This document shows, one piece after another, positions 27,507-50,456 of a stretch of DNA of 64,000 bases. The translations under genes and the position numbers were made by a program. Location: assembly GCA_000708835.1 (NCBI GenBank), contig DF237113.1:1-64000 (forward strand), written 5' to 3'. Source of the stretch: Klebsormidium nitens. Taxonomy: Eukaryota > Plantae > Klebsormidiophyceae. Within the stretch, counting starts at the first letter, position 1, and each line of letters starts with the position of its first letter. The notes under the pieces are model-generated. The model worked only from the letters and a program-made list of their open reading frames with translations. It made no database searches and was not told the DNA's origin.

Positions 27507-30500
27507 TCAAAAGTACTCAGCACATCTTTCTCTTCGTATCCGACTATACTCGAGGAGGCTACTATACGTCCGATCCGAAACACCCACGAAAAGGGCCTCC
27601 CCGTCGGGGCTGAAAGATACCCCGGCAATCTGCAAGGCCGAAGTATTCAGAGGCATGTTACAAAACAATTCAATGCCCTATTCGGCAGACAGACCTCTTG
27701 GCAAAGGCGTTCACAGGCGGCATCTGGCAGGGATGCGACTTTGAGCCCAAATTGAAACCACCCACCATGCTTCAGAGCCTCTGGAAACAACAGTCTGTGT
27801 GGACGACACACTTCCTGGATCAACTCGAGGGCTGAAGCTAGACCAGAGCTGTGTCAAACTGGTCACAACGTCTGAATGAACGCAAACGATATTCGACAAA
27901 CAGCCTTGTACTAACATCTCAAGATCCTCGAGCTCCTGACACCGCCCGTTCTTACGCGTTTTGGTTTACGAACGCACGACATTACAAGAAAAATTGAAGA
28001 GCCTTGTCCATACCTCCCCAAAGAGGTCAATTTCTTGACACCGCCCGTAGTCCCTCCCCGTCTCGAAGACGTGGACAAAGTCCGCGGGCTCCACCATCGC
28101 CAGGTGCCGCCCGTCGCCCGAGAAGCGCAGCGACCGGATGGCGCCGATGCGCCCCTTCAGCACCTTCACCGACTCCTTCAGGTTTCGTACGTCCCATAAC
28201 CTGGGGAAGGGTTACTGTGAAGTTAGGGTCATAGATAGCATGGTAGAGGAAAGCGGGGCCAGGATATGAGCTGCTGGAAATTGGTGCACAGACCTGGAGC
28301 GACAGAACGGAAGCAAGGAGATCACTCCAGGAGCTGCACGTATCACCCCCATACCAACTTGCCCGCTTTCAGCCCCATCGCAAGAAACAGCGGGGTGAGG
28401 ACAATCTGGCATAAGGCAAGCTGGTAATAATTTCGAACAGGGCAGCATTTAGGACCAGGAACTGCAGGAGGACCCGAATGAAACATAGAGTGCATGATCA
28501 CGTGATTGGGCGAGAAAATCGCGCTTCAGACAAGAGGCTCGAACAACAGAAAGAAGGGCACCCGGATGTTAGAAAGAGCAGTAGGGGGAATATCGGGATT
28601 AGCCAAAAGCAGGGACCCGGAGGATGGGCATCAAAAGTAACCGCAAACGACGGACGCGAAACATCCCAGTGAAGTATCGTGGATCGTCGAACCTCGCAAC
28701 GAAACGGATTGCTGAAAGCAGCTTCGATTCTTCCGACTATGTGCGAAACGATTATGACCAGTACGACTGCAAAGAAGACGCCGCCTCAAAGCCGCAAACA
28801 AATCGCACCCGAAACAGAATTTGAACCCTCCGCAACACCAGCTTAAAATAAGCTAAACTCGCCTCCCACTTCCGTTGATTCATCTCGCATCACGCATACC
28901 ACCTTTAGTGTCAAAGTCGGTGGTCAGCACCAGGTCAGCCTGAGATTCTTCCTGAAAGCCAGCTTGGAACGCATAGCATGGGAAAAAGATCTAGCCTTAG
29001 TCAAAAATGCTCTCAACCACCACGCCAGACCCCAACGCTGAAACACCTTAACCTCCAACACAACCCTTATGCCAAACAGCACAACACTCCCTGAAAAGGT
29101 CTACCCACCCCACTCACCTTGTCGTCGTGTCTTGGTTACCCGTCGCAAACACCCGCCCGTCTGGGTGCCACGCCGTCGCAAACGAGAAGTCCAGATGGCC
29201 CCGCAGGCTGGCCACCGGTTTCCCCGTCTGGAAATCAGCGATCAGGCCCTCGGGATCGTCCCCGACCACGCAAACCAGCTTCCCGTCAGGGCTAACCGAG
29301 GTGTGGTTAACCGCCCAGGGAAAGGAGAAACGGGAGAGGATGGCGAAGGAGGCGCCGTCGAAGACGCGCACGATGCAGTCGTTGTTGGACGTGAGCATGC
29401 GGACAGCCCCGCTGCAGAAAACAAAGAAGCGGTGTTAAGTTGGTTCTGAGAATATTGATATTGAAGTCTCGGTTTTGATAAGGATGGAAACGAAAGATTG
29501 CCCTGTCGAAGACGCGGACGAAGCAGTCGGTGTTGTGCCGACTGCCTCACTGCAAAAAGAGAAGAAGTGGCAAGCGACTCTGCCTCAAATCTTCAAAAGA
29601 ATGCTTCGAGAAATCGAGGGTGTCGAGTTGTGAGGAGGCGTAAGATGCTGGCACGGAGAAACGTGCAATTATCAAAGGACGTGAGACCGCCCAACTGCAG
29701 AGAAAAGGGAAGCGGTGATCTCCTGAGCGTTTAGTCTCGATCTCCAATTTTGACAGCGAAGGGTGACGGCATTGAAAGCCCGGCCACTGCAGTCGTTGCT
29801 GGGAGCCCGCAGACCGCCCCGCTGATGGGAAAGACAAGGGCGATGGGCAATTCCAAGTTCCGAATTCATACCTCAATTTTTAGGGCTTCGTAGTCTTTAA
29901 TGCCTAAAGGACGAGCTTCCTAGAACGCGCATGATGCAGCCAAACCGTCCCGCTGCAGAAAGGCGACGAGCTCTGAGCCTCTTGGTCGTTCAAACTGCAA
30001 CACTAAGTTTTCTGCAATCCCGATCTTTACAGGTTGTAGATACGAACAGTCGGTAACACGAGGATGCGATCACCGGTTATAAAGAGTTGCGGGAGGCCCC
30101 ATTGGAGAGAGTAAGGGAGAGGAATGCGAAAGCAGCTGTAGATGGGACGTTCAGACAGGGCCCGCTGTTGCAACGAGGAGCAACTAGCATCGACACCGGG
30201 GCGCTTCAAGACTGGCGGCGCATTCTTAGATATCGCTCCCTGAGGACTTTGCTTGTACAGACTTTGTTAGCAATCCGAGCTACCAACATTTGCGACTTTG
30301 TCAGCATTTCGAGCTTGAGACGAACGCGTGGCGGATGAAACATTAAAGTTGGGAAAACCTTCCAAACAGGAACCTCGAAAAAACCAGAAAGGCGCAAATC
30401 TTCGCGACAGCATGACGGTCCCCTTGTGCCCCAAGGTAAGCGTCGTGCTCTGTTGGTGGCACGGAGACTCCCACTCGAGGTGCAAGAAAGCGGGACGCAA

Positions 30501-33500
30501 AAAAGCGGTCTTTACCTTGGACTGTCCGTGACCTCAATTGCGTTTGTGATTGCATTGTCTGCGTGCGTGATGCGGCCGCTGTACGAGACCGTGGGAGTCT
30601 CCAAGTTCTGCACACAGGTTGCTGTCTACTTCAGTAGTGGCTTTTGCGGCTCGCTAGAGGTTAGACTATGTCTACGTTAAGTGGTGCTCAACGAAAATCA
30701 GCAGTTCCCTCGAAAAAATTAACGGGGGGGTGTTTTCTCAACGGGACGCCCGAAGAAGGGCTGCTTTCTCCTGATGAAACCGCCTTCTCCACAGACAAAA
30801 CGACACTGTTTGGGTTGAGACAAAGAAGATCTGTCTGCCTGAAATTTCCAGAAAGCCTAGATGCGGGGCAGGAGTTCGTTTATCGTAATCGTCATGATGC
30901 AAAGATCCAACGGTGTTTTCCCTAAAGCCGGACCCTGATGCTTTCAAAACTCCGAGACTTGCGAACCGCACCACAGAATCCTGAGGTCTCAAGTTCAACC
31001 TGATGCCTTGCGCAAAGCGTACCTTACAGACCATCTCGCCGTGGAACCCGCCTGCCACCAGCAGGTTCTTGCTGACGCACATGGTGCTGATCTGCACCCG
31101 CTCCATGCCGCCCGTCGGGATCCCGCTCAGCTGGTCCTGCCAGCTCTGGGGAGGGGAGAACAGAGACTGACGTCAGCAAGGGCAATATTTGGCTCAGCTG
31201 GTCCTGCCAGCTCTATGGACGGGGGAACAGAGAATGCCGTCAGCAAGGGATATTGCCAAACACTGAGTCGCACACTTCAGAAGGACAACGCTGACTTTGA
31301 CACAGCGCTCTCTGCCTCGTTGTTTCAGGGAATCTCTGGTCCCTGTCGAGAGTTCTCCTCACTGTGATCCCCTATCGGACGCAAATATTGTACCAGACCT
31401 CGTGCACGTTTTGTTATTGCACGTGACGAGGAGAGCATGACTTTCTCAAACAGCCAGTCAGGCCTTTTCCACCTAGCATTGACACTACTTTTGTACTCTG
31501 AAAGCTTCAAAGGCTAGGCCGATGTACGTTCGATGATCACACGACGTGCAATGAATGCTGACTGGCGTTGTCGTGTGTTAACACGAATACACGTGCCTTA
31601 CCTGTCCACTCAGATTGATGACCTGTGTCACTTTGTTCTGTAGTGGCGACCAGTGGTTGATCGCAAAGTGGTGCATCACGTAGATGTCGTGCTTGGAGTT
31701 CGCCCACACCAAGTTTCTCAACTGTCAAGGAAGGGATTTCAAGTCTTTTATCGTCCCTCGTTAATTACTCACGTGTCAGAGATAACCCTCAAGAGCCTAG
31801 ACGATCAGGCTCATCTTCCTTGTATGATTCCATCAGAATTTCGCGCCAACTTGAATTGAATACAACAGCGTATCTTGTCAAACAGAAATCAAGGCATACT
31901 AAACCGTGGAAAGTGTTGCAGAAGAAAAGCCTGGGTCACCAGATGGACAGGGACAAGACAAATTAGCAAAGACAAGCCTGTTCACCAAATAGACAGACAG
32001 ACAGACAGACAGACGCTAGACACACAGAGGCCGAACAGAACCAGCAACAGCGCGCAATCATTTCTACAAGTTTGTCGGAACCTGTTTGCGTTTCATCCGC
32101 TACTTAAACTTGGGCCTTCTTTTTCATGCCCTACATTAGGCCTCACTTACCCGAGCATAGCAAGACGTTCCCAACTCACAGACGTTCAAACCTCACAGTC
32201 CATAAAGGAGTGGGCCGACTGACCGATTACAAGACCTGCTACACAACGGCTCACACTCTGGTGGGAATCGTCCACTCCTGCCAAAACTGTTGCCTATCTC
32301 TGTAGACCTGGCTTCCCTGCAACTCAAATGGCTGGCCGCGAGCTTGCATGTCATCATTGCAACCTATTTGTGATCTAACCAGGGGCGATCAACTGTTTGT
32401 TATCTCACCAGGGGCGATCAACTTGCCTACCGGCATCCAGCTCGCTCATAATCACGCGGTCGTCTCGTAGAGACTTGCTTAACTAATTTCAGGAAACCAG
32501 GATCAACTTGCATCTTCCTGGTTATTCGAGCGCTGGACCACCATCGGCACAATAGAGTTCTTGATCCAGATTGTGCATTTGTACATATAGCCGAGTAAGA
32601 CTAAATTGAGATCAACGAGAGAAGACGCCAGAGGATGCACACATGAGATCTGAGATAGTCCATAAAAACGCACCTGGAAGTGGACTACAGTCGACTTCAC
32701 CCCCCGCGCATTGTACTGGAAGTCAAACAGCTTGGCACCCGAAGTGACGGGCTGGCAGACCTGCGAGGATGGGGAACACCAGAAAATCAGTATTTCCGGG
32801 GGCTTATAGGCACACAATAGCCAGACAGGTGAAGATGCACGTGAACCAGTATCTGTATATGGTCTAGTTCACTTTTGGAAGCTTTGCCCAGACAAGAAAG
32901 ATTTAAGTATTTGTTCGTTAATAAATTTTCACACAATGTCCAACTGTTTGGATGTACTGTGGGGTTAAGCTGCCTGGCGCTAGTAGCATCTCAGAAGTTC
33001 TCTGGGCGTGCGGACAAGGACAACTTGGCTGCTGCAGTCAGGTTAGGGAAAGTGTTTTGGCTTAGTCAAAATAACCTGATTCAGGGGCTTTTGGTCCAAG
33101 GCTTTTTGAGGAAGGATAACGACTGATACGTGCTAGAAGAGTGACATGCTTTGCGCAATGCCTTCTCCACTCCTTGGTTGTCAAAGTGGCTACGTGGAGA
33201 AACCAGGCAAAAGATGGGGAGGGGGCAAACTTACATTCGAAAAGTTGGCTGTGTGTCCCTCATTTTGAAGCGAAAAAAGGGAGAATTTCAAAGAAGGAAC
33301 GAACCTTTTCTAGCTCTTCATGCGCAACATCCAGGTTCTCATAGTTTTTGTACTGTTGCAATCGGGTCTCCCTGTAACGTTCCCTTGTGAAGTGCATTCG
33401 CTCCCAAGGGATCCCCTGAATATCCTTGCCTTGTCTGTGCTGAGCCGCGGTGGTGTCTAAGGATTCTTCGCCCTGCACAGATAGTAAGAAAACGTCTTAA

Positions 33501-34273: not shown

Positions 34274-35250
34274 GTTTCACAAAAGTTGGCTGTGCCCTGC
34301 AGAGGGGGTGGGGTTTGACGAGCGCCAAGAAGCAAAACCTAGCAAACTACCACTAAAAGCAAACGTTGACCCCGACTCTAAATGTTCCAAAAACTCAGAC
34401 GGAACTTGGGAACCGAGAAACTGGCTCTCTGATTTGTCAGACTTGCCCCGTCTCTATCAAGTGAGAGAAACTTAGCATTTCTCAAACCGCAAATGCAGCA
34501 GCACAGCTGGTTCTATGAAGGGTGAGAACCAGCTAGCTAGAACTTCGCCAGATCGTTAGGCACCAACCATTGCTGAAGCAAGAAAGCAAACGGCGGCCCT
34601 TAGAATTTTACAAGGGAAGGGAACGCCCTACAGTCTACTGCCACTGGCAAAGCTGGCAAGCAAAGCAAAGCTGCATATAGGCTATGTATGAGGCGCTGGT
34701 ATAGGGTTTGGCAGAACCCTAAAGCCTGTGAAATTGAGTCTGGCTCAAGGTAGCTGGCGCGCGCGGGCGCGAGGGCATGACCGGAGTCCGCTGCACGGCG
34801 GGGCGGCGCCGGCCTGGCATATTAAAGGCGGCCAGCGCCGGGGGCTCGTCGCTGACGGATTTACAGGCACAAAAAGAGGGTCTGCGCAGAACACAAAAGA
34901 ATGTGAAGTGAAGGCAGTCGTTGAAGAGGAACTTCTATTATGGCTATTGTTACTAAGGTAGAAAGAGCCGCTGAGCATCGCTGCACCGTACATCTGCATG
35001 ATTGATGGTCCTGCCATTCATATAGTAGAATACGGTCATTCTCGCAGATTGCATGCAAATCTATGGACAGGTGGTCTGCAATAGCAAGGTGTGCAACCAG
35101 GCTTGATTCACCACCGACCGGCAGTGCAGAATATGATTAGGCACAGCAGGCAACCTGCGAAAAGGGCATGGGGATCTTCCGAGGAGCTGGCAATCAATCT
35201 TTGCCTAGACGAAAGATGTCATTCTCATCATCCAATTGTCCCCTGGAACG

Positions 35251-35316
35251 GGGGCAGCTTCGGATGATCTGAGAGTTACATATGGACTGGGGCAGCTTCG
35301 GATCAATTGAGAGTTG
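35251..35316. repeat. Direct repeat upstream of the ELO-kinase gene, period 38 bp
   Basis: ggggcagcttcggat....tgagagtt occurs twice. Confidence 0.8.
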
Positions 35317-35408
35317 AGCTCGCAAGATGGCTCTGAGCTAGTTTATTGATCGCCGCACATGAGCTACCTGAACTCCCAACACTCGGGATTCTAAATAGAA
35401 AGGACACA

Positions 35409-38400
35409 ATGTACTTGCTTGTCCTGTTCAGAGCTCTATGGCTGCTCTCAGTCTGGCTCGTCTACGCCGTGGCTCCAGACTTTCTTCTCCTATTCTTCAG
35501 TCTCGCGTTGCTTCCATTCCAGCCCAAGGCCCAGCCTTCAGTCAGCTCATGGCTTTTCTTGGACGATTCCAACATCATCCAGCTCAGCATCATCCACCTC
35601 CTTGTCCTGGGTAAGCTCGTCATTTACATTGCTTAGCTCTGCCAAACGATTCGCCATCTTCACAGAGTGCTGCTCTTGCAGTCTGCCTGAGCATAAGGAG
35701 TGTTTGAGAATAGTCTGGGAAGCGGGCTGCATGTAGATAAAGGAAGCTTCGTTTCCGACAGTCAGTGGTCAGCTTTCGAACGGGGCAGCAGCTAATGACT
35801 TCTGTAGAAAGCCCCTGGCATCTGGATGAAAGAAGACAATCTATGCACCGTGTGGCTAAGTAGATACTGATGTCAGAAATCCAGCAAGTTCACACTCATC
35901 TCAGTGTACAATCAGGTGCGCAGACACAGCCTCTTAAACGCATTTTGTTACAGACTCCTGGCTGGTAGACGAGCAAGCCTACCAGCCAAGCGAGGCCGTC
36001 TTTCTGGTGAAATCCTCTAGGTCTCCTACAAACCCAAAGGAAATGACGCTTTCAACCCTGTAGACTTGAAATTTCAACATCCTGTCCTGCAGAAACATGC
36101 AAGCGGCAGGTCCAGAAGCGCGGCCGTGCCTTGCAGCGCCCCAAGACCGCCCGCGCCACCAGCAGCCTCCTCCGAGCGATCCTCAACGTCGCACTCCTCC
36201 TCTCCCTTGCGCCCCCACTCTTCTCCAACATTCTTCCAAGCTTCCTCACGTCACAGCCAGGGTCGTCTGAAGGGAGGCAGGAGGCAGCAGCATTGAGTAG
36301 GGGAAGGAATCCGGGAGGGTACTGTTGGGGAGCAGATGGAGGAGCCTGTGTGCTCTGGGTGTTCTTTGTGGCGAAACTGGTCCAGGAAGTTGCAACTGGG
36401 GTACGTGTTGTGCTGGAGAGTCACCCCCACATCACAACATTGGACGTGTTTGCGGTGCTTAGGAACAACCCGCCCACGTATTGGGGTGAGTGACCAGTCC
36501 CCGCACCTTGAAAAGAACCTCTTTTGCAAGGGCAGTGTGCTGTGGATGTTGTTGTCATGACAGACTCCGTTAATGCGGTTTCACATGGCCAATTGTTGCT
36601 ACGGTCCAAAGATAGGCTCTCGAGAGTAAACATCGTGGAATCTTTCGTTTATTATCAAGTTGGGGTCGACCCGAGGGGGCTGCTACAATCGAGCACCATA
36701 AAATGTTTCTTTTTTGAAAAGCCTCGCATCTAGTTAAACAATCAATGGGGGGGCAATCTAACATTTCCGGGGTCTGAATTGTTTGGCAACCAAAGAGCCA
36801 GGGTTGTCAAAAGAAACTGCACTCCTGATGGCGAAGCCACGACCGCTGCAAGCTAGTCAACCCTCAAGCTTCACACTTCGGATGATGTACGCCCTGAGAA
36901 AGTTGTCTTTTGGCAACTCGCCAACCGCTCGTCTCCCTTGCCCTAGATTAACTTGCAGTATGCATATACTCTCAAAATTCGTCTCTTCCTCTCGAAAGAA
37001 CAAGAAGAACCGTTTCGAAAAATGGGAAGCGGGCATGTGTGCCTTTCGTTATTGCAGGAAAGAGGAGAATTCGTAGTATTCAAAAAGGGACGTAAAGCAA
37101 AACGGTATCACCTCCTATGATTGCGTCAGTAAACATTCCGTCAAAACACAATCTGGGCTTATTCTTATTGCAGTCTGGTGGCTCCTGGTTCGTCACAGTT
37201 CCGGCCCAGCCGCCTGTTTTGCGGCCGCCCTTGACTGCGCCTGCCAGGTCCTCATTCACACCGGCAAGGTCGTCGGTGTGAATAGCCACTTCCTGGCCAG
37301 CTGCCTGGTCTTTCCCCAGCTAGCCCAAGTGCTGTACCTGCTTATTCACACCGCCTGCCCGCTCCCACTCCTGGTCAGCCTGCCAGGGGTGGTGGTGGGA
37401 ACGGGCGCGTTTGTCTGGACGATGGCAGGGCGCTCGAGTGAGAGCACTCCCGCAGCTTTCTCGCTACATCTGTCAATGCCAAAAAGAAGCATAAAGCTGC
37501 TCTGATCCGTTATTTGTGGACCCTGCGAGGGACCACCTTCACCGTCCTCGTTGTTGAGACGTTACGTCTTTTATCGACATGCCGGAGAAGGTAGTATTGA
37601 AATCTATGGAGTCGAGGCCATCTCTTTGTGGATTACTCCAATACGGATGTACGAGGGGAACGAAGCCCATATCAAACTTTCTCAATTGATTATGAAGGGC
37701 AAGGGATCTCCGAGATTTTGGGATTTGAAGCTCGTTCACCTATCGGTGTTGCGGACAGATGTTTCAGGAAAGACGGCGTTATCGACGGTCTCACACGCTC
37801 CTTCCGTTCTTTTGCAGCTGAAGGCAGCACGGCTGCATCCGACCGCGTCTTCGACGCCGCTTATGGCTGGTCGCTTATCATAGGCACCTGCCAGCGCATC
37901 GCGTATGGCGTCCTCCTCCGAGACAAGAGCGAGACCTGGAGCTTCAGCCGCAGAGTCCTCTACCTGATCCTGCGCGAGAAAAGCGCGGTCTGGGAGATCC
38001 CGCGCAAAAGCCTAGAACTAGGGGCGCGGCTCGGGGGCGGGGCATACGGGGAGGTGTATCTCGGCAAGTGGCGCGGATCCACGGTCGCGGTGAAGCGGTT
38101 CAAGCGGCAGAGCAAGTCGGAGTGTGAATACGAGCGGTGAGGCTGACGCAAGAGGGTTCGGCTCTTGAGCACTTAGGCTGCTGGAAACTTGCAGGGCTAT
38201 GCTTTCCCTGTTTACCTCGGAGATTTGAAGCGTCATGCTTCTCCAGAACTGAAGGTCGACCATGCTTCAATCAAGGCAAAGCTTTTGGTGCGCACATCCA
38301 TTTTTAGAGACGAGGAAAGAAAACGGAGTCCATAAGCTGGAACAAGGCGCAATGACTTCTAGCCGTATCACCAAGAGTGGATGCATCTTCCATCCAGCTG

Positions 38401-41400
38401 TCGAGACCTCGAAGCGTACGACGTCAGCATACACAACTCGCACTTCAGAGAATGTATTCGCAAGAGAAGGGCTTTACCAGAAGAGGCGCCGTGCAAGCAG
38501 GCTTTACAGGGAAAAAAGGTATCGTCCTCAATCGGACCCGCTCCGAGTGTGCTGCAAGGAAAGCCGAGGAAAATGAAAGGCCCGGTTGATCACCCGTCAA
38601 GTTTCGCAAAGTACACCATTCTCTCTGACGACGTACCGAGCGTTTCATCACCTTGGTGACCTACGAGAGCTCACTTTTATTCTAATTGATTATCGAATAT
38701 TTTTTCTAGGTATCTGACTTTCAAGGAGGAGGTCAACGTGTTGAGCCGCCTTCGGCACCCCCGGATCGTCGAGTTCATGGGCGCCACTAGCCGCGGGGGG
38801 GAGCTCCAGATCGTGACGGAGTTGTTGCAGGTAAAGACAGCATCCTCCTAGGACAGAATCAGCGCCTGTTTACTCATCGACGAAGGGAACTCAAAATTGT
38901 GAGAAAAGGTTCTGCAAGCAACTAGCGGAAGGGAAGTTTTGGCTTTCACCATCAAAGTAGATCCGATGTTTAGAGTTAAGCTGGGCTCATCAATCTGCAA
39001 CGAAAGCTACCAATGTTGGACACTGGCAGGGCCCAACTATGTGATTATGAGCAAAGGCTGCAAATCTATGTCAGCTCAGAACTTTCGCACAAAACCACGG
39101 CTGTGATGCCGATTGAGGCTTCACACTCACTACCTTCTCGACTGCATTGGGAAGCTTATGCGACTTCCTGCACGCATTTTACAAGAAGGCACGAAAGGAA
39201 CTTCTGTTCATAAAGACATCACACTCAGCATATCCCTTTCTTAAGATCGACTTTCTGCACGGCCCCAAGGGCACGCCTTACTTAGAATGAAGCTTCTGAA
39301 CCTTGACATTTTGCGCAGATTGTTCCTTGAAGCAGTTTGGTAGCTCATACGTCTTTCTGCACGGCCCCACAGGCACGCCTTCCATAGAAAGCCAATAATA
39401 AAAGCTTCTGAACACGACTCTCTTTCTCTGACTGCAGTTCGGCAGCTTGTACGACTTTTTGCACGGGCCCAAGGGCATGATCCCACGCAAAAAGGCCCAA
39501 ACGAAACCTCTAGATTCCGGCAGTTCGCGCTTAGCTCTTCCTCTGATTGCAGTTCGGCCCAAGGCCTAACTCCGCAAGACGACACGAAGGGAATGTACTC
39601 AATGTTTGCACTAAAATCTTCCTCTAATGACTAGCACTTTTTACTCAGCCCATCGTCTGAGAACTCAGCGCTTGTTATTCAATCTTCTCTGACTGCAGTT
39701 CGGCATCTTGTACGCCTTCTGCACGGCCCCAAGGCCATGCTCTTACACAGAACGACGGGAAAAAGCCTCCGAATCCTGAAAGTTCGCTTCTTCGGCTGCA
39801 GTCTGGCAGCTTCTGCGAAATCTGCATGCCCTCAACAAAAACAACCGAAGGAGCTCATTAAAAAGAAATAGTTCGCTCTAAGCTTTGTCTCTGACTGCAG
39901 TTCGGCAGCTTGTACGACTTCTTGCACGGCCCCAAGGGCATGATCCAGCGCAAGAAGGTCGCGATGGACGAGCGGCGCGCGGCCAAGATCGCGGAGTCGA
40001 TCGCGATGGGCATGCAGTTCCTGCACACCAACGAGCCGCCTATCCTGCACATGGACCTCCAGGTGAGACCCTCTTGAGTCGTCGCGCTTTTCTTCATCAT
40101 TCCTGTCAAAACTCAGTTGTGTTCTCACTCCTCTTTCCAAACGTTTCTAAAGATTCCGGTTGAATATTCATTGCTTCGTCACGCGTCGTTCCTTCAGATG
40201 ACGATCAGTTTTCTTTGCGCTCCTCTTCTTGTTGTTCCTAATTTCATTTGAGGACGCCTCTTAGGGTCAGCCCCGAGCACATTTCGCTTGTGAAGTAAAA
40301 GCTAGATCCCGCGCGATTAGCGCCGAGCCTTTCGAACGTGTCTGCGCGTGATGACTGAAACAAACCTGCTTCAAGAAATTTTCTAACCGTACAAGCCGTG
40401 CTCGCATCTTTTTACGGGAGTTGGAACATATTGAATGGGTCACTGAGGGGGTGCTTCGGTTTACAATTGGTGACTTTACTTCTTACCAGAGAAGTCCTTA
40501 TCAGAAAAGTATGTTAGAAGAATCAAGCCTGCCAGTGCAGGATTGCAACGGAGTGAGAAAACCCGCGGCTGACATTCATCTTCCCTCACAGCCCGGCAAC
40601 CTGCTGATGGTAGACGTCTGGTCCTGTAAGCTATGCGACTTTGGGCTGTCGAAGTTCAAGTTTAAGAGCAAGGGCGACCACAGGGAGGCGCCACGTGGCG
40701 CGCCGCAGTACCGCGCCCCCGAGTTGATCGAAGGCCACTGGGACCTGCTGTCCGAGAAAGCGGACGTGTACAGGTACGTGAAAGCGGATTATTCGAGAAC
40801 TTGGTTTTGCCTGCTTCCGTTAAGCACCTGTCAAGGTCAGGAACTTCACATGGATTCTTGTCTTCGGTTATTCGTCATTTCTGTGAGGAGACAACGATCC
40901 TTGAGGGGGAAGGTATGCGCTGCGAAAAGGTAGGCGGCTTTGTGACAAAAGCTGACGTGCGAAAGTAAACCCAGTTTTTAAGATTTGCGACTTGACGTTG
41001 CTTGCTATTTGAGAGAATGGAGTCCTGATGTCTGTGCGCCCTTACGTTGTGGTTTTTGACCGCGCAGGGATCTCAGAAACCACGTAGACAAGTTTCATTA
41101 CTTTGAACCAAGCTACACCCACATCACGGGATCGGAAGCCCGCGAGCGCCGCAGACTTGGCTTTTTTGACGAACTGAACGGCCTCTTAGATTCCTGAGGA
41201 GGAACATCAAGTCCCACGTAGTCGGCACCGTTCCATATGACGCCAGCACCTTGCCTGTACTCCTTGCGGACAAGCTGACAGTACATTCTCTAACTTAGAT
41301 CCTGATGCCTTGGCCGTTCCGTTTTTGGTTGCAGCTTTGGCATCCTCCTGTGGGAGATCTTCACGTGCCAGATCCCCTGGGACGGCCAGATCATCGAGCA

Positions 41401-42022
41401 AGTCTTCTATAGCGTATCCGACAATCAGGAGCGGCCCCCACTCCCGGAGAACGCCAGCCCCGCTTATCAGAAGCTCATCCAAGACTGCTGGGCCCCGAAC
41501 CCCGAAACCCGCCCGACGTTCACCGAGATCTGCGCGCGCCTGCGCGAGCTCGTCGGCAGCGCGGCCGCGCCCGGCTCGCGCGCGGGGTCCTTCACCGAGG
41601 CGATGTGCGCGCAGAACGGAGTTCCGCCCGCGCAGAACGGAGCGTCCGCCGCCCACTTTGCCGCGGTCGGGTTGAGCCCCCCGACCTCCCCGGTGCACCG
41701 AAGCGGGGGGTCTTTTAGCATGGGGAACGGTTCCCCGCAACTATCCCCGGTCGGGGGAGACTCGGACTCTCCCCGCCGGCGCACGTCGTTCACCGTTCCA
41801 CGCGAAGACGTGGCCGGAGAACCGTCCACCGAGGAGAAAGCCGGGAAAACGCGAGAGGAAGAAGGCGTTGCCTCGACCGGTGCAGGATCTTCCGGGCACA
41901 AGGCCGCGGCGCCGTGGGGCGTCGTCGGCGGGTTGCACCACCATGCGCGCGCGCACAAGAGCCGCTTCTCGTATGCGGGACCTAGGATAGTGACCCCTGA
42001 TGCCGCACCGGAAGCGTCTTGA
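35409..42022 (+). CDS. Multi-pass membrane ELO/GNS1-SUR4-like domain fused to a Raf-like (TKL) protein kinase, 8 exons, ~776 aa
   Basis: Exons: 35409-35610, 36093-36485, 37174-37437, 37818-38136, 38710-38830, 39901-40062, 40592-40773, 41335-42022. The total of 2331 nt is phase-consistent. Kinase motifs: [72 protein letters not shown]-like motifs: [42 protein letters not shown]. The start codon and the fusion splice are inferred. Confidence 0.75.
39240..39830 (+). repeat. About six decayed copies of the kinase exon-6 acceptor and exon start, in intron 5
   Basis: Real: ctctgactgcag|ttcggcagcttgtacgacttcttgcacggccccaagggcatg (39901). Copies have AG at 39334, 39436, 39551, 39697 and 39800; an acceptor-less copy lies at ~39248. 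The 39436 copy reads [19 protein letters not shown]. Confidence 0.93.
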
Positions 42023-43202: not shown

Positions 43203-46200
43203 TTATAAATGGTAACCCTTTAAAAATGACTGTACAGCGATCATTGCCTCCGTCCACAGTCTTCGTGCCTTTTGATACTCTCTTAGCCGCTGCAAGTACT
43301 GCTTTTTCCCCGTTCCAAATCGAGCGGCCTCAATGCAACCAGAGCAGGACCCATTTTTACCCTCTGCTTGTAGATCTGCTGCCGCTTGCCCGTCAGATCC
43401 ATTAGAAGAAAGCGAGGAATCAGCTTTCTGTAAGGTCTCCTTCTCCAGCAGATGGGCGCTTAACCTCCTATCCGCACATTTCTCGCTCTTCCCAAGCGCC
43501 TGGGCTCGAACTCGTCCCCAAATGTACTCAAACTCTGACTCAACCGCTGCTTCCGTCAAAATGAAGTCACCCAGTGCAGTAGAAGCGGAGGTAGCTTTTG
43601 TTTCAACCCCGATCTGGGAGACCGCCGTATCTAATGCGCTTTCAAATACCGAAATATGCTCAATGTTGGACTTGCCAAGAGGTCTGCTCGCTAGGCTTTT
43701 CTCCGGGTCTTCATTCCATTTGACATTGCTTGCGCCGAACCCATCCGAATGGGAGGGCTCCGAGACTTTCGCCACTCTCAAAGCGCTCCGATGAGCGACT
43801 TCCGCAGGCATCCGGTTCCGTTCCGGTTCATTACTTATAGACGAAGCGAGGCTCCCGCTGCCCTGAACCGCGCCAAGTAGGCAGGCCTTGCGGAGCTCCG
43901 GAATCGAGTCGGCCACAACGTGGACGGCTGCGAATAAGGCCACGTGGCTCAATCAGCGTTAGTTGAGAACGGCAGGAAATTCTGAATCTAATGATACTGT
44001 CCACATCTGTTCCTACCCGTGATCGTAGCAGCGAGCATTTCAAAACCTGACGGGTGAGAACCAAATGGTCGCCAAATCATTTAAAAGGAACATCACGAAA
44101 TAGTAGAACTTTGGTTAAGCAAGGAGATTGATAGAGACAATCCCATTACGGTTCAAATGCGGGTCACGCCTGACGTGGACCGCGGGTACAGAGCCCAATG
44201 GTACGATGAAGCAAGATTCTTTTCAAAAATGTCGTCCACGACAATTGCTGGGAGGGATGCGCCTGCCTGAAGTTCCAGAGCAAAGATTCGTACAGATGCC
44301 ACAGCAGATGGAGACACAGGTCAAACCTTCAATAACGCGTATTCCAACTCATTCGAAGTGAAATTTGGAAAGATGTTTGGCAAAAGAGCTTCATTCGACG
44401 ACGGGAGGAAATCATGATGACGGACCCCCAAGTTGATCAGAAAGAAGCCGTGCAGAACGTAGGAACGTACAATTTGGTGTTTGGGGGCAGAGAAACCATC
44501 TGCCGCGTGTATTTCAGTGGCCAGGGCAGATTCTGACGATTGCGAGGGCGACACCAGAACCGGACACTGGATTTTAGCGTCCTTCACAAGGGGGTTCAAC
44601 TCGTTCTAGTAGTTGAAACCTTCTCTGGCAAAGCTGAATAATTCCATCTCCAAATCTGGGCGACTCTCAACCTGGAATATCTTGAAGACACCAAATAGTA
44701 TCCACGGTTCTCACAGCCAGTAGTCCAAAAAGCCCAGCGGCTGGCTTACCTTCATAGCATCGACAGCAGGGCCGCGGATCCCCCGACTTCGCAACGCTTC
44801 CGCTGGACACCCTGCTTTTCTCGGAATGCCCTCCGCCGGAAGGCGAACTGACCGGGTCGCGCATTGAGAGAGGACATTTCGGCGGTACTTCGACCGACTG
44901 TTCGGATGGAAAACCGGAAAGGTCGACAGGAAGAGTGGCGGCCTGGACAGCAGCATTGAGGAAGCCTTCCCAGCTGCGAAGTGCGACAGGAACACTTGTC
45001 AGGAACCCTTCGCGGTAAGTGAGAGGATTGATAATTTTAGGTGGGCTTGCTAGCTCGCGCACGTATCTGGCCCCGGTGGCCTGACTTCGAACCCCGGAAA
45101 ATTGACAGCACTCTTTTAAGCTGTTCTCATACTCTCGGGCTCTTTGCACGGAAGCCTGCCCGTACGTAGACAGTTGATTCGGTTTCCGAGATTTTCAGAT
45201 GGCATGACTTCGTAACCCGCACAACCTGACATCACAATCTTTTGTTGCTCTGACAATATCGCGCTCTCTGCAAGGAAGTCTGTCCGTACGTAGACACTTG
45301 ATTCGATATTTTTAAGCTGTTGTCATACTCCTGCGCTCTTTGCACGGGAATCCGTCCGGACGTAGACACTGAGCATTTTATTGGATGTTGCCCCCATGCT
45401 TCAGAAAGATTGATAGCGAGACCCTGAGGAACGATAACGGTGATACCCCTGAGTGGCAAACTTCTAGTCTCGTGACGCTCGAGACTCTCCTCGAAGCTTC
45501 TAGCGAGCAAGAAGTCTTATAGAGTTATTGACTTTTTGTAATCAATTGGCTGCCTCGAAATCTGGGGAATACTCCGGCGACGCGTCAAATCAGGTCGGTT
45601 TCAAATGTTGCCTTTTTCAGGCGACAAGTGGTTGCTTTCGAAACGAAACATGTGGCCGGCCCACCTGAAGGGCTCCTCGACTTCGACTCCGAACGTCACG
45701 TGCAGCGACTCCACGTCCAACGCCGTCGCGACGTGTGTCCATCCCCTCGGAATATACAACACGTCTCCTTTCCGCATCTTAAACTCGCTACAAATACTCC
45801 CGGCGAGTTCCGGTTCCAATCTGGGAGCATACAAACGCGGCATCTGCTCGCTCTCGAGCGGCTCGTAAAGCCGCCAGAGCTTGGACCCCGCCAGCTGGCA
45901 GACAAACACGCAGTGGTCGTCGTAGTGGGCCGCTAACCCCTGGGAGTTAGCGGGGGTTAGATAGGCGTTAACCCCGACCCCCGCTTGGCCTAAAGCGAGT
46001 GCCATGTTATTGGCTAACTGCGCAATCTCCGAGATCCGGCACTGGAGGCCCCGTACGGCAACGCTAAACCCGTTTTTGAAGGCTTCCCGGCAGTCACCAG
46101 CGCTCACGAACCGTGGGTTAGCCAAGTTGGTTTCGGTGACTGGAAGGGATCCCCCTGGGCCATCGACATCAGTCCGAGCCGATTCTGCCGAGCCCACTTT

Positions 46201-48665
46201 CGAAACCGCTTCTGAAGCTGAACCGGATTGCCCCGTTTTGCCATCGAAGTGCACAAGCTGCCCGGCAACTGTCTTGACTAAAGTGACGTCACGCCCATAC
46301 ACGAGCGGGCCCCCGAGCTCCTCCGAGGCCTCCCGCAACGCCGTGATGACGTCACACTCCTCGGCGGCTGGGGAGGGGCATCCGACTGCCCCTTCCAGGA
46401 ACTCAAAGAACTCTTCTGAATCTTCCGAACCCTTTACCCCACTCAGGGGCCACGGAAAGCCCCTTCCGTCAGCCTCAGGCTCCTTACTCGTATCAGCTGG
46501 AAAGAACGCCGGCCGCTGTTCCCACACCGTTTGCAGAAAACCCCCCAACCCCGCCGCCCCAAAACCGACCAGAGTCCCAAAGCCCGAGCGTGCTTCTTCG
46601 ATAGCAGTGCCGTGGGCCTCCGCACTGGCAGTGACGTCATTCTCGAAGCTGAAGTCAGCAGCACCCCCCTCGAGGGAGAACCTTGCGGCCAGCGCGCAGA
46701 CTTTAGCCGTCTGTTTCGGGGACAGTTCACCTCTGATTTCAGCATCGCTAGTTGCTGACGAGAGTGCCTCAAGGGCCAGGGAGGACCTGCCACGTGGCAG
46801 CTCGCCAATGGCTGGAGCGGCTTGACAAAAGAGCAGCGCGAAGATGGCGTCGAGCAGGGGGAATAAGGCGGTAGGGGTGTTGGATGCTCTTCGTTTGCGT
46901 TTCCTGGGGGTGGTGGGGCAGGTGGGAGCAAGGTCGATGAGGCGGTCCCTAGAAGAGCAAGGGTTGGATTAGCGCAGAATGCTCATTGAAGAGGGGTGAT
47001 ATTGTCAACAGCAGGCTTAAGTGACTGCCATTGACTGCAATACTTCATTTTGACAATGAGCGAAGCTGGGCTCACCAACACTATCCAAAAGTGGCTGATT
47101 CAATGGGATTCATGCGGCGTTGCATTAGGGGGAGAGGGAAAGCGATGACATGATGTGCGCGAAGACTAATCAGCATAGTTCAGGTGCTAGGTATACATGA
47201 GCAGAGGCAGCAAAGGCACCTGCATCTTAAGGCTAAGACGTGAAAAGCGGCACTGAAAATTTGACCAAGTCAAACGCTCCTGATTTGCCTTCTGCATTTC
47301 GCACTGCTGTGACGGACATACAGTCAGTAATCAAGAAAGAGGAGACAGGGAGAACAACAAGAAGGAAAAGGAAACATGAAAAACCTTGCAGTGTTGCAAC
47401 CAGACCATATCTTGCCAGCTGGATTGTCTCCCAATCATCCCTCTGTTTCCCACTCTGCTTACTCACATGAGCACTGGGAGCGCCCCTTGTGCAACCAGCG
47501 CTGCGCTCCCCTCGTCTGAGGTCGCCAGATCTGAGAGTGCATTCACACAGGCCTCGAGAACCTTGCCTGAGCCAGCGTCTGCCAGGCATGCCACGAGGGT
47601 GTGAATGAGCCCCTCCTGCTGCGCTAGCGCCCTGTTGCTAGCCAGGGAATGGAGGGCAAGGGCGCCAATGAGTCTGAGTGCAGAGACAGACCTGCAGAAG
47701 GAGGAAATCTTCGGAGACCAGTCAGCGATGAGAGTTTGTCTGGCAGCTTGTTCGCAGTCAGCTTACGAAAGACACCGGACGGACATAAGCCGGGAGAGAG
47801 AAGACGAGAGTTAAAAGATAGACGTGACCAATTCACCCCATATGCGGTCCTTAGAGTTCTTATCTTCAAGGGGCCAGTCCAGCCAACGCTTTCGAAGGCG
47901 ACAGAGGGCCAAAGAAGACAGCTTGAGTGCCTATGACTTCATACCAGACCTTTGGATCCAGGCAGACTAAGTTGAAGACATATTACATAGACCCATGCCT
48001 TCAAATTGAGCTACTGCCATCCTCCAACTACACTGAACAACGCTGCTTAGTGCCGGCCAACTGGGGGCACATGATTGCTGCCCAGCTTTGAGAGACTCTT
48101 AATATTCACTCATCCATCATCTTTGCAACACGAAGTAGCCCCACTCCGCTTCAATCTACCTCCCAAAGTCTCACAAACGACAAAGTATCAGCAAGTACAT
48201 TCTGGAAAAACGGGTCACCCGGCTTATCCTGCGATGAGGGGTGGTGCAACAGAATGTAATCACCGCAAGCCATTTCAAGGAAGCAGATTAGCAATGCTGA
48301 CCCGCCCCAGCCCAAGTTTTTCTTATTGTTCAACTTCTAAGCAACTCAACATTGAGCTCTCTTGCGCAGTAAGTCTCAGCATTGAGTTTGATTGACATGG
48401 TGTTTTGAAAACGAGAAACAACACAACTTTGTTTCAACAAAGGAATGTATCCAACCTCAAATACGTACTTGTTCTTCACTAGAGTTACAAGAACTGAAGG
48501 CATAGGGCGCAGGCAATCAGGGACGCTGGGACCATCTTCTTCCTTCGCAATGGCTCTGCGCAGATGCTTGCAGGCAAGGTCTGCAGCGGCCAGCTTATCT
48601 CCAGTCAGCTGGCCATCCTCCTCACACTGCGAAAGACATCGCCATGCGGCTTCTGCAGCAGCCAT
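43203..48665 (-). CDS. JmjC/cupin_4 (NO66/MINA53-RIOX-type) 2OG-Fe(II) oxygenase with an N-terminal ARM-like helical region, 5 exons, ~884 aa
   Basis: Exons: 48469-48665, 47467-47691, 45665-46948, 44750-44973, 43203-43927, phase-consistent. JmjC core: [32 protein letters not shown]...GDVLYIPRGWTHVA...SLHVTFG, then WEGFL and ELRKACL. Basic NLS-like RKRKRR. Confidence 0.88.
45113..45372. repeat. Imperfect intronic tandem repeat (2-3 partial units)
   Basis: ttttaagctgtt.tcatactc...gctctttgcacgg occurs at ~45114 and ~45310. ccgtacgtagaca or ccggacgtagaca occurs three times. Confidence 0.8.
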
Positions 48666-49200
48666 GATTGCTCTGGATACCACATTCGATCACCTGCTTG
48701 CAGAATCTCATGAGCAATCCGAACAGGGGGAAGATGTTTGTTTTGTTAATTCAGGACTCGTCTTCGTATATTATCCAGAAAACTGACCTCTTATGTTTGT
48801 CGCATGGCCTAGCTGAAGCCAACCGGCTCTACCGGTACTTGTATTAAGCCCGGTGAGCTTGGAGGCCATGAGCCCTCACTCTGAACTGCGGCCGGGCGAA
48901 GGAATACTTATACCCGGTTGTTCCTCAATTAAACCCGCTGGATGTACGTGGATCTATGGATCTTAGGTTCGCGTGAATTTATGAGGCTTGCTTGGGCTTG
49001 CTGGGAAATCGGCAGCTTGCCAGTGCTGACCAGCTTCCAACTTCTAAGTTCTAGCAGAAAGGGCGTCATTGTACAATTTTAAAGACAAAGGCGTCATCCA
49101 AAAGACCTTTCGATCAAAACCAAAAGACACCCACCTGCTTAGGAAATCATCAAGACTATTACTTGAGTCTTTAGCGACCGCTCTTGCTATGATCGCAGTG

Positions 49201-50456
49201 ATGAGCTCCACACCAACGCCCATATGGCGGCGACCAGTAGACCTCTTCTTTGTTCTCTTCTTTGTTGTTCACATTCCCACCGCTGCACTTCTTGACGCTC
49301 AATCGATCCTGCCTAGAGATTGGTTCCATGAAGAGCTTCAAAATCTTATGAAGTCTCATATTGACTCGACTGGAGACCCCCTGGTGTCAGCGAATCCGCC
49401 TTGGTTCAAAGCACTGGTCTGGTGTGAGCTGATTCTCCAAGTGCCCTACTTTGTGGTCGCAACTTATGCATTCATCAGAGGTGAGGAAATTGCGGAGCAC
49501 CCAGATTCTACCGCACATTTGTGTCCGACATTGGCAGCCCCCGCTCATTTCTTCACCCTGGCCGATGCTTCATAACACACTGCAGGAGCCGCTGTCAAAT
49601 CAGCCTTCACAGCCTCTTTGTCTTGAAGCCTTATGAAATGTTCTCATCCGCAAGAGCATATTCATCAGTGCTTGGAAGTCTGCCACCACCACAGTGAGAG
49701 AATCACTAGGTTGCAGCGCCTCTGCGCTCTGCACCCATCAGTGCCACCGCTTGTGTGAGGCACCCGCAAAGCGAAAGTGAGTAAGCTTGTTGACACTCGA
49801 AATCTATCTGCAGAAGTATAAATTGCTGAAATGGTAGCCTTTCCCGGTCCATTGTAGGAAAGAGGTGGATCAGGACGCCAACAATCATGTACTGTGCTCA
49901 CGTAGCTACCACCATGGTGAGTATGCGCATCTTGTTAGAACTTCAATGCAGGGGGTTTCAAGGCTTGGGCTTTCGTTCTTTCAAAGTATTTCTCATGAGC
50001 CCAGACATTTCGATTGGTGTGAGTAAGGCAACTTTTCTTCTGGGCCCTCATCTTATCATCTTATGTGTTGGGGGGCCGGTCTACTGTGTTGCACTGGCAG
50101 CCAGCGCAAGACTAGTCATCGATGATTGTTACATTCCCTATGCGGCTGGATTGACATTTTGGCCTGCTCCATGGGACACTTTTTCAACCAGAAGGAGGTT
50201 TACAAGCTTCTGCTTACTATATCAAGACATCTTGCCTGTGTACTGGGTTGCCAACGTTTGACACTGCTTTGAGGTATTGCAGGTGCCTATCTTCTTTGAG
50301 ATCATGAGTGCCGCTTTGTCGTCAGAAAAACGATCAACTCTTGTTGCTATCTATTTGCCATTTTTGGTCGTCCCGCTCTTATTGTTGGCTCGCGTACTGT
50401 CTAGTAGTCCGGACAAGCTTTTTTGCGCAAAAGAGAAGAATACAAAGAAGGAGTAA
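49201..50456 (+). CDS. TMEM97: TMEM97/sigma-2 receptor-like EXPERA-domain ER membrane protein, 3 exons, ~170 aa
   Basis: Exons: 49201-49480, 49858-49916, 50283-50456. Motifs: FFVVHIPTAALLDAQ, GDPLVSANPPWFKALVWCELILQVPYF, WIRTPTIMY..HVATTMVPI, IYLPFLVVP, Lys-rich C-terminus. Confidence 0.88.

Follow-up and report, generated by a model that had tools for sequence, protein, structure and literature searches.

The question raised by this locus is whether a multi-pass membrane domain and a protein kinase, encoded on the + strand between positions 35409 and 42022 of the window (the whole 64,000-nucleotide stretch of DNA that was analysed), belong to one protein, and where the membrane domain comes from and what it might do for the kinase. 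The reading that we consider fairly probable is that the gene encodes an expressed and conserved polytopic membrane kinase of 776 aa, in which a pseudo-elongase domain for ligand binding or docking steers a TKL kinase.

Transcript Evidence for a Single Gene

The membrane domain and the kinase are encoded by one gene and found in one protein. The preliminary description had proposed a single fused gene, in which a phase-1 donor at 37438 is used with a phase-1 acceptor at 37817, and had suggested looking for transcripts across 37437/37818. Both splice sites are used; the spliced junction 37437->37818 is found in transcript contigs of all four runs, which come from four studies and carry two organism labels. 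All of the transcript contigs match the window at 99+% identity. Contigs from the four studies carry the first six exon junctions, while the seventh is implied by the loose end of the contigs at 40773, which continues with the first letters of exon 8. A single contig of 3168 nt extends from 5' of 35200 through exon 4.

One of the runs also contains an unspliced contig covering 37408-37847, and if intron 3 were retained, translation would terminate at the stop codon at 37503-37505. This contig is what speaks for a wrong gene model, in which the gene of a membrane protein with its stop at 37503-37505 has been fused to a separate kinase gene. However, the junction is present in each of the four runs on contigs that connect exon 1 with exons of the kinase, the first kinase exon (exon 4) was confirmed to have no in-frame ATG of its own, and the phase-1 donor and acceptor are kept in three species. 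The two-gene reading is exceedingly improbable, and it was rejected on the spliced transcript contigs.

Gene Structure and Splicing

The sequence reads as an open reading frame of eight exons and 776 aa, from the ATG at 35409 to the stop codon ending at 42022 on the + strand, and every intron has the form GT..AG. The main frame is closed 5' of the ATG by an in-frame TGA at 35334-35336, and the sequence of the 5' leader (35327-35394, + strand) contains two short out-of-frame uORFs with ATGs at 35327 and 35359. Transcript contigs are unbroken over 35200-35609, that is, the leader and exon 1. Exon 1 (35409-35610), as defined by the transcript contigs, encodes aa 1-67 and holds the start codon. 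Residues 1-38 form a hydrophobic extension at the N-terminus, in which AVA/PD at 20-24 is signal-peptide-like, and residues 49-67 form the first helix equivalent to those of ELO. This exon and its phase-1 donor are kept in loci L001, L002, and L044. Exon 2 (36093-36485) encodes aa 68-198 with a basic loop of 21 residues, a helix (aa 92-116), a variable loop (aa 119-149) and a conserved core. Exon 3 (37174-37437) encodes aa 199-286, including a stretch of 17 residues at the place of NxxxHxxMY, the sequence VFPQLAQV and the last helix, and has its phase-1 donor after 37437. The ELO-like core (36338-37410 minus the intron 36486-37173; aa 150-277) spans the junction between exons 2 and 3 and aligns to ELO TM3-TM7.

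Intron 3 (37438-37817) joins the membrane part to the kinase part. Exon 4 (37818-38136; aa 287-392) starts with a conserved juxtamembrane segment (aa 287-345) followed by the start of the kinase, and exon 5 (38710-38830; aa 393-433) encodes the helix C region with FKEEVN at 397-402 and is 100% identical in L044. The last residues of exon 6 (39901-40062; aa 434-487) are HMDLQ of the catalytic loop. Exon 7 (40592-40773; aa 488-547) encodes PGNLLM, DFG (503-505) and APE (529-531), while exon 8 (41335-42022; aa 548-776) encodes the kinase C-lobe to about aa 620, and then a tail and the stop codon. The tail is Ser/Pro/Gly-rich and its DNA is GC-rich. All of these exons lie on the + strand.

Intron 5 contains about 5-6 decayed tandem copies of the start of exon 6 (39248-39958, + strand) with a period of about 100 nt. 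Each copy consists of the acceptor and the first ~60 nt of exon 6, and they are found 5' of the real exon. In the transcript contigs examined, exon 5 is joined solely to the acceptor at 39901 and not to the decayed copies. Similar pseudo-exon remnants are found in the intron of an ortholog (L044, 13076-13117 and 13224-13286). The kinase gene is neighboured by a JmjC ORF.

Orthologs and Selection

Orthologs with the same exon phases are found in two further species, and one of them is complete. Exons, phases, and splice sites are retained in L001, L002-4, and L044; the complete ortholog, L044, has an intact frame of 772 aa and the same gene neighbourhood as in the window. When the window is compared to L044, dN/dS is 0.19 for the N-terminal part of the membrane domain, 0.15 for the ELO-like core, 0.16 for the juxtamembrane segment, 0.04 for the kinase and 0.29 for the C-terminal tail. 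The kinase is under very strong purifying selection despite its atypical catalytic loop (HMDLQPGN). Locus L065, from a human-gut metagenome, is not taken to be human DNA, but as a precaution it was left out of all alignments. A phmmer search with exon 2 against 1.84 billion representatives returned only ORF fragments of the orthologs and two spurious repeat proteins, and scanning metagenomes for a spliced metatranscript with a profile of exon 3 gave no match.

The Membrane Domain

Exons 1-3 encode a hydrophobic protein, as had been proposed, and hydropathy indicates that it is multi-pass, with seven hydrophobic segments between aa 49 and 283 and a first loop (aa 68-88) that is rich in Lys and Arg. 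The profile comparisons below suggest that this domain is very probably ELO-derived, as a remote and degenerate relative of the ELO/ELOVL proteins. The ELO profiles were built from retrieved ELO proteins, the identity of which was confirmed by matches to Pfam ELO (1e-31 to 1e-68), and included a first, narrow profile, a virus-heavy profile and a broad profile cut at <50% identity. Using hmmsearch --max, the spliced domain scored 14.4 bits against the first profile, 10.9 against the virus-heavy and 17.0 against the broad one; the per-sequence P-values corresponding to these 11-17 bits are about 1e-5 to 1e-7. The ELO-like core is credited with 13.6-17 bits, for which P is about 1e-6 to 1e-7, and the best score, 17 bits, is below the Pfam ELO cut-off of 27 bits. 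Using hhalign, the score was 39.6 (probability 61%, P 8e-5) for the first profile, 31.3 (18%, P 1e-3) for the virus-heavy and 49.1 (90%, P 2e-6) for the broad profile. The hhalign probability thus varies from 18 to 90% with the ELO sequences that make up the profile, and it is higher with a broader profile. The query alignment is very shallow (three species, Neff 1.3), and the fold is putative, being read from sequence profiles.

The two methods and four ELO profiles all gave alignments in one register, and the similarity spans residues ~150-270, the better conserved half of the hydrophobic span, corresponding to ELO TM3-TM7. None of 20000 sequence shuffles reached 14.4 bits, and none of the 560 plus 300 local column shuffles reached the hhalign scores, the reversed query scoring 17. 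Local shuffles that preserve the hydrophobicity pattern did not come near the real score. When the exons were used separately in hhalign against the ELO alignment, the exon 2 profile matched ELO columns 108-135 (P 0.0028) and the exon 3 profile columns 162-248 (P 0.006), and these matches are collinear. In the reciprocal search, the HMM of the domain placed ELO proteins at ranks 1-3 among 331 giant-virus ORFs.

The preliminary description had listed ELO motif matches by eye and extended the similarity over residues ~30-290. Both HMMER and hhalign reproduce its register for residues 150-260, and the profiles bear out similarity over about 150-270 rather than the whole span. The N-terminal third of ELO aligns at low confidence only; the matches listed there (20 residues) recur in the same register in the low-confidence extended alignments and are insignificant alone. 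A search with Pfam ELO (PF01151), which had been suggested as a check, gave no match with single exons, and at E<=10 Pfam found neither ELO, GPCR, nor any other family in exons 1-3 taken singly. Likewise, when the PDB was searched with profiles made from the alignments of exon 2 and of exon 3, ELOVL7 (structure 6Y7F) was not listed, and a language-model feature search of the ESM Atlas with exons 2 and 3 gave no usable match. Gene models that use Pfam only miss the architecture, as the ELO signal does not emerge until exon 2 is spliced to exon 3.

The domain might instead be a multi-pass domain that is specific to its lineage and has no relation to ELO, the profile similarity being due to chance or to convergence between helical membrane proteins, and the gene would then simply encode a polytopic TKL kinase with an unknown type of sensor. 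Such an origin would fit the missing Pfam, PDB, and atlas matches for the exons, the near restriction of the exon 2 matches to ortholog fragments, the hhalign probability of 18% with one of the ELO profiles, and the fact that every ELO signature box is degenerate. Nevertheless, the register agrees between methods and profiles, the score climbs as the ELO profile is broadened to reach P 2e-6, far above the shuffles that keep the hydrophobicity, the two exons independently match collinear ELO segments, and ELO proteins come first in the reciprocal search. We therefore regard an unrelated domain as quite improbable and ELO descent as the better reading.

Replacement of the Elongase Catalytic Boxes

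At the position of the HxxHH box (FLHxxHH) the protein has TTLDVFAV (aa 182-189), the aligned residues being D185, V, F, A188, and V189 in all three species. This replacement of the catalytic His box had been noted previously, and the HMMER and hhalign register agrees with it. The site of the box also has an insertion of four residues (RNNP), with two prolines. KxxExxDT corresponds to AKLVQEVAT (aa 161-169), where K162 and T169 are kept while Glu is changed to Gln (Q165) and Asp to Ala (A168). The NxxxHxxMYxYY box, also described as replaced, is D219-C-A-C-Q223-V-L-I226-H227 in the profile alignments, with N, H, and MY all substituted, and at the TxxQxxQ position (V244-F-P-Q247-L-A-Q250) both Gln residues are kept and the Thr is lost. 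Because the histidines of the His box, the Asp of KxxExxDT and the Asn, His, and Tyr of NxxxHxxMY are replaced, condensing activity by the ELO mechanism would be impossible. Given ELO descent, the protein very probably has no elongase activity. The box replacements as well as many buried polar residues are unchanged across the three species; K162, Q165, E166, R172, E176, H178, H180, D185, N192-N193, R205, H206, D219, Q223, H227, K230, Q247, Q250, and H257 are invariant.

The Kinase Part

Exons 4-8 are collinear with Pfam PK_Tyr_Ser-Thr (PF07714), matching positions 1-43, 47-83, 86-128, 132-188, and 190-258, respectively. The nearest solved structures for the two lobes are MLK1, MLK4, CTR1, and B-Raf/Src, and for the C-lobe MLK1, MLK4, and CTR1. 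By sequence the kinase is of the TKL type (Raf/MLK/CTR1-like), in agreement with the Raf-like kinase of the preliminary description. It starts at WEIPRK (345), followed by the G-loop GGGAYGEV (359-366) and VAVK (376-379, with Lys 379). FKEEVN, DFG and APE are likewise found. In the catalytic loop HMDLQPGN takes the place of HRDLKxxN; Arg is changed to Met and Lys to Gln, while the Asp and Asn are kept. The loop, which had not been mentioned in the preliminary description, is identical in L044, and the transcript contigs have no variant letters there.

The Lys to Gln replacement may mean low or no phosphotransfer. A pseudokinase or a very weak kinase that signals by scaffolding would account for both replacements and for their identity in L044. 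Yet the G-loop, the VAVK Lys, the helix C Glu, the catalytic Asp and Asn, DFG and APE are retained, and a dN/dS of 0.04 suits an active enzyme, although it would suit a constrained scaffold too. We consider a pseudokinase or very weak kinase unlikely.

Proposed Role

The ELO-like topology and the Lys/Arg-rich loop at aa 68-88 would place the C-terminus, and thus the kinase, in the cytosol. The pseudo-elongase barrel is probably situated in the ER membrane. It would keep a polar pocket that might bind acyl-CoA, CoA or a lipid ligand, or it might dock to the elongase machinery. The conserved juxtamembrane helix (aa 287-345) could then relay the state of the barrel to the activity or the partners of the TKL kinase. 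To ligand sensing over mere anchoring we give somewhat less than an even chance, and 'receptor' and 'lipid-sensing' are words for a function that we infer. A more doubtful proposal is that the tunnel inherited from an elongase has kept the ability to bind a very-long-chain acyl-CoA or a related lipid, and that its occupancy switches the fused kinase.

Alternatively, the role of an ELO-derived domain could be limited to anchoring the protein in the ER or docking it to the elongase complex, siting the kinase by the enzymes of lipid synthesis with no sensing of its own; we hold this possible, though its probability is well short of even. Canonical ELO proteins reside in the ER, the catalytic residues are gone, and the kinase evolves under much tighter constraint than the membrane domain (dN/dS 0.04 vs 0.15-0.19), all of which speaks for an anchor or dock. 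The buried polar and charged core residues that are invariant in three species, on the other hand, exceed the needs of a plain anchor, but they remain compatible with partner docking.

If the domain does bind acyl-CoA or lipid, the protein would offer a testable path from the membrane-lipid or VLCFA status to kinase signalling. A kinase switched by occupancy would represent, in the plant lineage, an intracellular receptor kinase for lipids that is derived from an enzyme, and would link the ER lipid status to MAP3K-type signalling in one chain, in a form missing from land plants. The host, probably Klebsormidium, appears to be an early-diverging streptophyte alga, and this group serves studies of plant adaptation to land.

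Comparison With Known Systems

The combination of an elongase-like domain and a Raf/MLK-type kinase was not found in the literature or protein libraries searched, in line with the earlier statement that no described protein with this architecture was known. Pseudoenzymes as sensors and multi-pass membrane kinases are known already; what did not turn up in these sources is an elongase fold wired to a Raf/MLK-type kinase.

The protein resembles the ELO/ELOVL family (PF01151) by its collinear profile similarity over ELO TM3-TM7. It keeps the Lys and Thr of the KxxExxDT box, WW after TM4, Gly before TM5, and the two Gln of TxxQxxQ together with the His after them. The hydropathy and the basic TM1-TM2 loop also agree with the ELO topology, a seven-helix barrel that has its N-terminus in the lumen and its C-terminus in the cytosol. 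It differs in lacking the HxxHH histidines, in the RNNP insertion and the extra N-terminal hydrophobic stretch, in carrying a C-terminal kinase plus tail of 490 aa, and in scoring under the Pfam cut-off.

CTR1, a plant Raf-like MAP3K, is soluble and acts at the ER bound to the ethylene receptors. CTR1 and the animal MLKs have the closest solved kinase C-lobes, and CTR1 is likewise a TKL kinase at a membrane. While CTR1 is recruited non-covalently, the algal kinase has its membrane domain in the same chain, and its catalytic loop is HMDLQPGN rather than HRDLKxxN.

TMEM120A/TACAN has an ELOVL-like fold and is CoA-binding and non-catalytic (PMC8376247, PMC8480983). It provides a precedent for an elongase-like barrel without catalysis and with a CoA ligand, the two being likened by description. 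Unlike the algal protein, TMEM120A lacks a kinase, and it starts with a coiled coil at its N-terminus. In a further group, transmembrane kinases with a multi-pass, GPCR-type membrane part are found in oomycetes, ciliates, and amoebae (PMC10463195), and GPCR-PIPKs have also been described (PMC5784254). These share the order of domains, with seven membrane helices first and then, at the C-terminus, a cytosolic kinase, which is TKL-type in some lineages. Their membrane domains are, however, GPCR-like, while that of the algal protein resembles an ER lipid enzyme, and they differ also in lineage, the algal gene appearing to be from a streptophyte.

Gene Structure and Transcripts

The region 35409-42022 (+) was read and its candidate exons were assembled into an eight-exon open frame of 776 amino acids, in which all introns have GT..AG borders. 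The membrane domain is encoded by exons 1-3, at 35409-35610, 36093-36485, and 37174-37437, and the kinase by exons 4-8, at 37818-38136, 38710-38830, 39901-40062, 40592-40773, and 41335-42022; all are open and on the plus strand. A TGA at 35334-35336 lies in the main frame 5' of the ATG at 35409. The transcribed leader (35327-35394) also contains two short out-of-frame uORFs of 5 and 12 codons, stops counted, starting at 35327 and 35359.

The stretch is present wholly or partly in 18 public runs from six studies, and four of these runs (four studies, two organism labels) were compared with the window over 35200-41199. The contigs compared all match the window with an identity of 99% or more and are spliced, which marks them as transcript assemblies. 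The interval contains six junctions, and each was seen with GT..AG borders in every one of the four runs; the first bases of exon 8 are read at the loose end 40773 in every run as well. The contig X5 (3168 nt) starts more than 300 nt 5' of 35200 and spans exons 1-4, a coverage shared by X9 (2034 nt) and X11 (1504 nt). The proposed joining of membrane and kinase exons through 37437/37818 is thereby borne out by spliced contigs in 4/4 runs, which excludes two separate genes as the main product. Run X1 has an additional unspliced contig (37408-37847) at a depth not far under that of the spliced form, so some intron 3 retention or pre-mRNA exists. The retained form would reach a stop at 37503-37505 and encode a predicted membrane-only isoform of about 308 amino acids; transcripts ending there, which the preliminary description had named as speaking against a single gene, are not the main form.

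Intron 5 harbors about five to six decayed tandem copies, with a period of about 100 nt, of the acceptor and first ~60 nt of exon 6 (39248-39958). Similar exon-5-like and exon-6-like remnants are found in an intron of L044, a contig from a further species, at 13076-13117 and 13224-13286. Exon 5 is spliced only to the acceptor at 39901 in the transcript contigs examined, and the copies could be remains of a duplicated exon or act as decoy acceptors.

Orthologs and Selection

When 1.84 billion representative proteins were searched by phmmer with exon 2, only two matches were real (78% and 70% identity), both ORF fragments of related organisms; one more fragment came from a subsequent profile search. 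The contigs carrying the fragments (L001, L002-L004, and the 182-kb L044) display the same exons, exon order, and splice phases as the window gene; where the membrane part meets the kinase part, donor and acceptor are again of phase 1. L044 encodes a complete ortholog with eight exons and an intact frame of 772 amino acids. Genes encoding WD40-repeat and JmjC-cupin proteins flank the gene in the window (~29000-31100 and 45601-46548, minus strand) and in L044 (189-656 and 19946-20597) in the same order and orientation, making the locus syntenic between the species. An ORF at 49069-49575 (+) of the window resembles, by eye only, a membrane-protein exon of the TMEM97/EXPERA type (sigma-2 receptor/sterol isomerase-like). 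Two protein libraries contained no full-length product of the gene or its orthologs; the fused architecture seems to be absent from the protein sets searched because these gave only prokaryote-style single-exon ORF fragments.

Comparing the window with L044 gave a dN/dS of 0.19 for the N-terminal membrane part, 0.15 for the ELO-like core (aa 150-286), 0.16 for the juxtamembrane segment, 0.04 for the kinase (96% amino-acid identity), and 0.29 for the C-terminal tail, the loop aa 119-149 being saturated. The low values of the membrane domain indicate a constrained protein domain and not a leader. The tail is rich in Ser/Pro/Gly/Ala and less conserved except for a conserved ending of 23 residues; the last ~500 nt of the coding sequence (41500-42022) have about 70% G+C.

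The Membrane Domain

Hydropathy indicates a multi-pass N-terminal region with seven hydrophobic segments between aa 49 and 283, and an additional hydrophobic stretch at aa 1-38 with a signal-peptide-like AVA/PD site. This domain had been described as collinear with the ELO fatty-acid elongases. Pfam scans run per exon gave no ELO match, exons 1-3 matching no family even at E<=10. ELO profiles were built from three sources: a His-box DNA pattern that gave 39 loci on viral contigs (ten ORFs matching Pfam ELO at 1e-31 to 1e-68), two homology searches that gave ELOVL4-like animal proteins and virus/cryptophyte ELOs, and a metagenome scan that gave 68 diverse full-length ELO ORFs; L065, a human-gut metagenome locus, was excluded as a precaution. 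ELO genes of 223-303 amino acids with an intact His box are common on giant-virus metagenome contigs (L005-L043, IMG/VR), and close ELOVL4-like copies occur in genomes of the avipoxvirus type, with Magpiepox, Pigeonpox, and Turkeypox as the names of the best database matches.

The spliced membrane domains of three species scored 14.4 bits against the first profile (51 sequences) in hmmsearch with filters off, 10.9 against a virus-heavy profile, and 17.0 and 13.3 against broad profiles at <50% and <60% identity; the per-sequence P was about 1e-5 to 1e-7. The corresponding hhalign scores were 39.6 (61%, P 8e-5), 31.3 (18%, P 1e-3), 49.1 (90%, P 2e-6), and 47.9 (89%, P 2e-6). The alignment is constant over the profiles and pairs aa ~150-270 with ELO TM3-TM7, crossing the exon 2/3 junction, which is why single exons fail the Pfam filters. 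In 20000 shuffles of the sequence, global or local, 14.4 bits was never reached. Local column shuffles never reached 39.6 (0/560) or 49.1 (0/300; maximum 31, Gumbel-fit P 5e-8 to 1e-6), and the reversed query scored 17 in hhalign. Taken singly, the two exons aligned collinearly with ELO, exon 2 over columns 108-135 at P 0.0028 and exon 3 over columns 162-248 at P 0.006. When 331 ORFs from giant-virus contigs were searched with the domain HMM, ELO proteins took ranks 1, 2, and 3 (rank-sum P 1e-13; 0.002 vs eight non-ELO membrane ORFs). ELOVL7 was not among the matches of PDB sequence-profile searches with exon alignments, and an atlas search with the exons gave nothing. The collinearity stands for aa ~150-270, and the register proposed for the N-terminal third was recovered at low confidence only. 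Probably the membrane domain is a remote homolog of ELO, the fold being predicted from profiles.

In the common alignment the KxxExxDT position reads K162-LV-Q165-EV-A168-T169, the NxxxHxxMY position D219-CAC-Q223-VL-I226-H227, and the TxxQxxQ position V244-FP-Q247-LA-Q250, with the next His kept as H257. W200 and W201 keep the WW, and G209 one Gly of the following GG. The FLHxxHH position is T183-L-D185-V-F-A188-V189, directly preceded by an ESHPH motif and followed by a four-residue insertion, RNNP. Neither the aligned motif residues nor ESHPH vary in the three species. The ELO-type condensing reaction requires the His box, and since this is replaced in 3/3 species, including, as previously proposed, in the gene of the window, the domain is, judged from its sequence, no elongase. 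Many conserved buried polar residues suggest that a putative pocket is still of importance. A very basic loop (aa 68-88) corresponds to the cytosolic TM1-TM2 loop of ELO and, together with the seven segments, would leave the C-terminal end, with the kinase, on the cytosolic side.

The Kinase Domain

Per-exon scans showed exons 4-8 to be collinear with positions 1-258 of Pfam PK_Tyr_Ser-Thr, and the G-loop, VAVK, helix-C Glu, DFG, and APE are retained. The solved structures nearest to the kinase lobes are those of MLK1, MLK4, CTR1, and Src/B-Raf, which by sequence comparison makes it a TKL kinase, and the label "Raf-like" is fair. The catalytic loop, HMDLQPGN, keeps the Asp and Asn, with Met for the Arg of HRD and Gln for the Lys; it is identical in L044, and letters varying from it are absent from the transcripts. 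The dN/dS of 0.04 indicates that the kinase domain clearly matters; its phosphotransfer may be normal, low, or absent.

Possible Function and Precedents

The fused membrane-kinase gene first observed is confirmed, and a dead ELO-like domain and a TKL kinase in one predicted chain are well supported by sequence profiles. It is plausible that the membrane domain senses acyl-CoA or a lipid and would thereby control the kinase; that it merely anchors or docks is a serious rival. A limited literature search, which is no proof of absence, found no paper describing a kinase fused to an elongase-like domain, in line with the earlier statement that no described protein of this architecture is known. 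The papers searched offer two precedents. TMEM120A has an ELOVL-like fold and binds CoA without catalysis (PMC8376247, PMC8480983), and protists have GPCR-type multi-pass kinases with TKL domains (PMC10463195). The gene can be regarded as a lineage-restricted variation on two themes already known, pseudoenzymes acting as sensor domains and membrane kinases of the multi-pass type.
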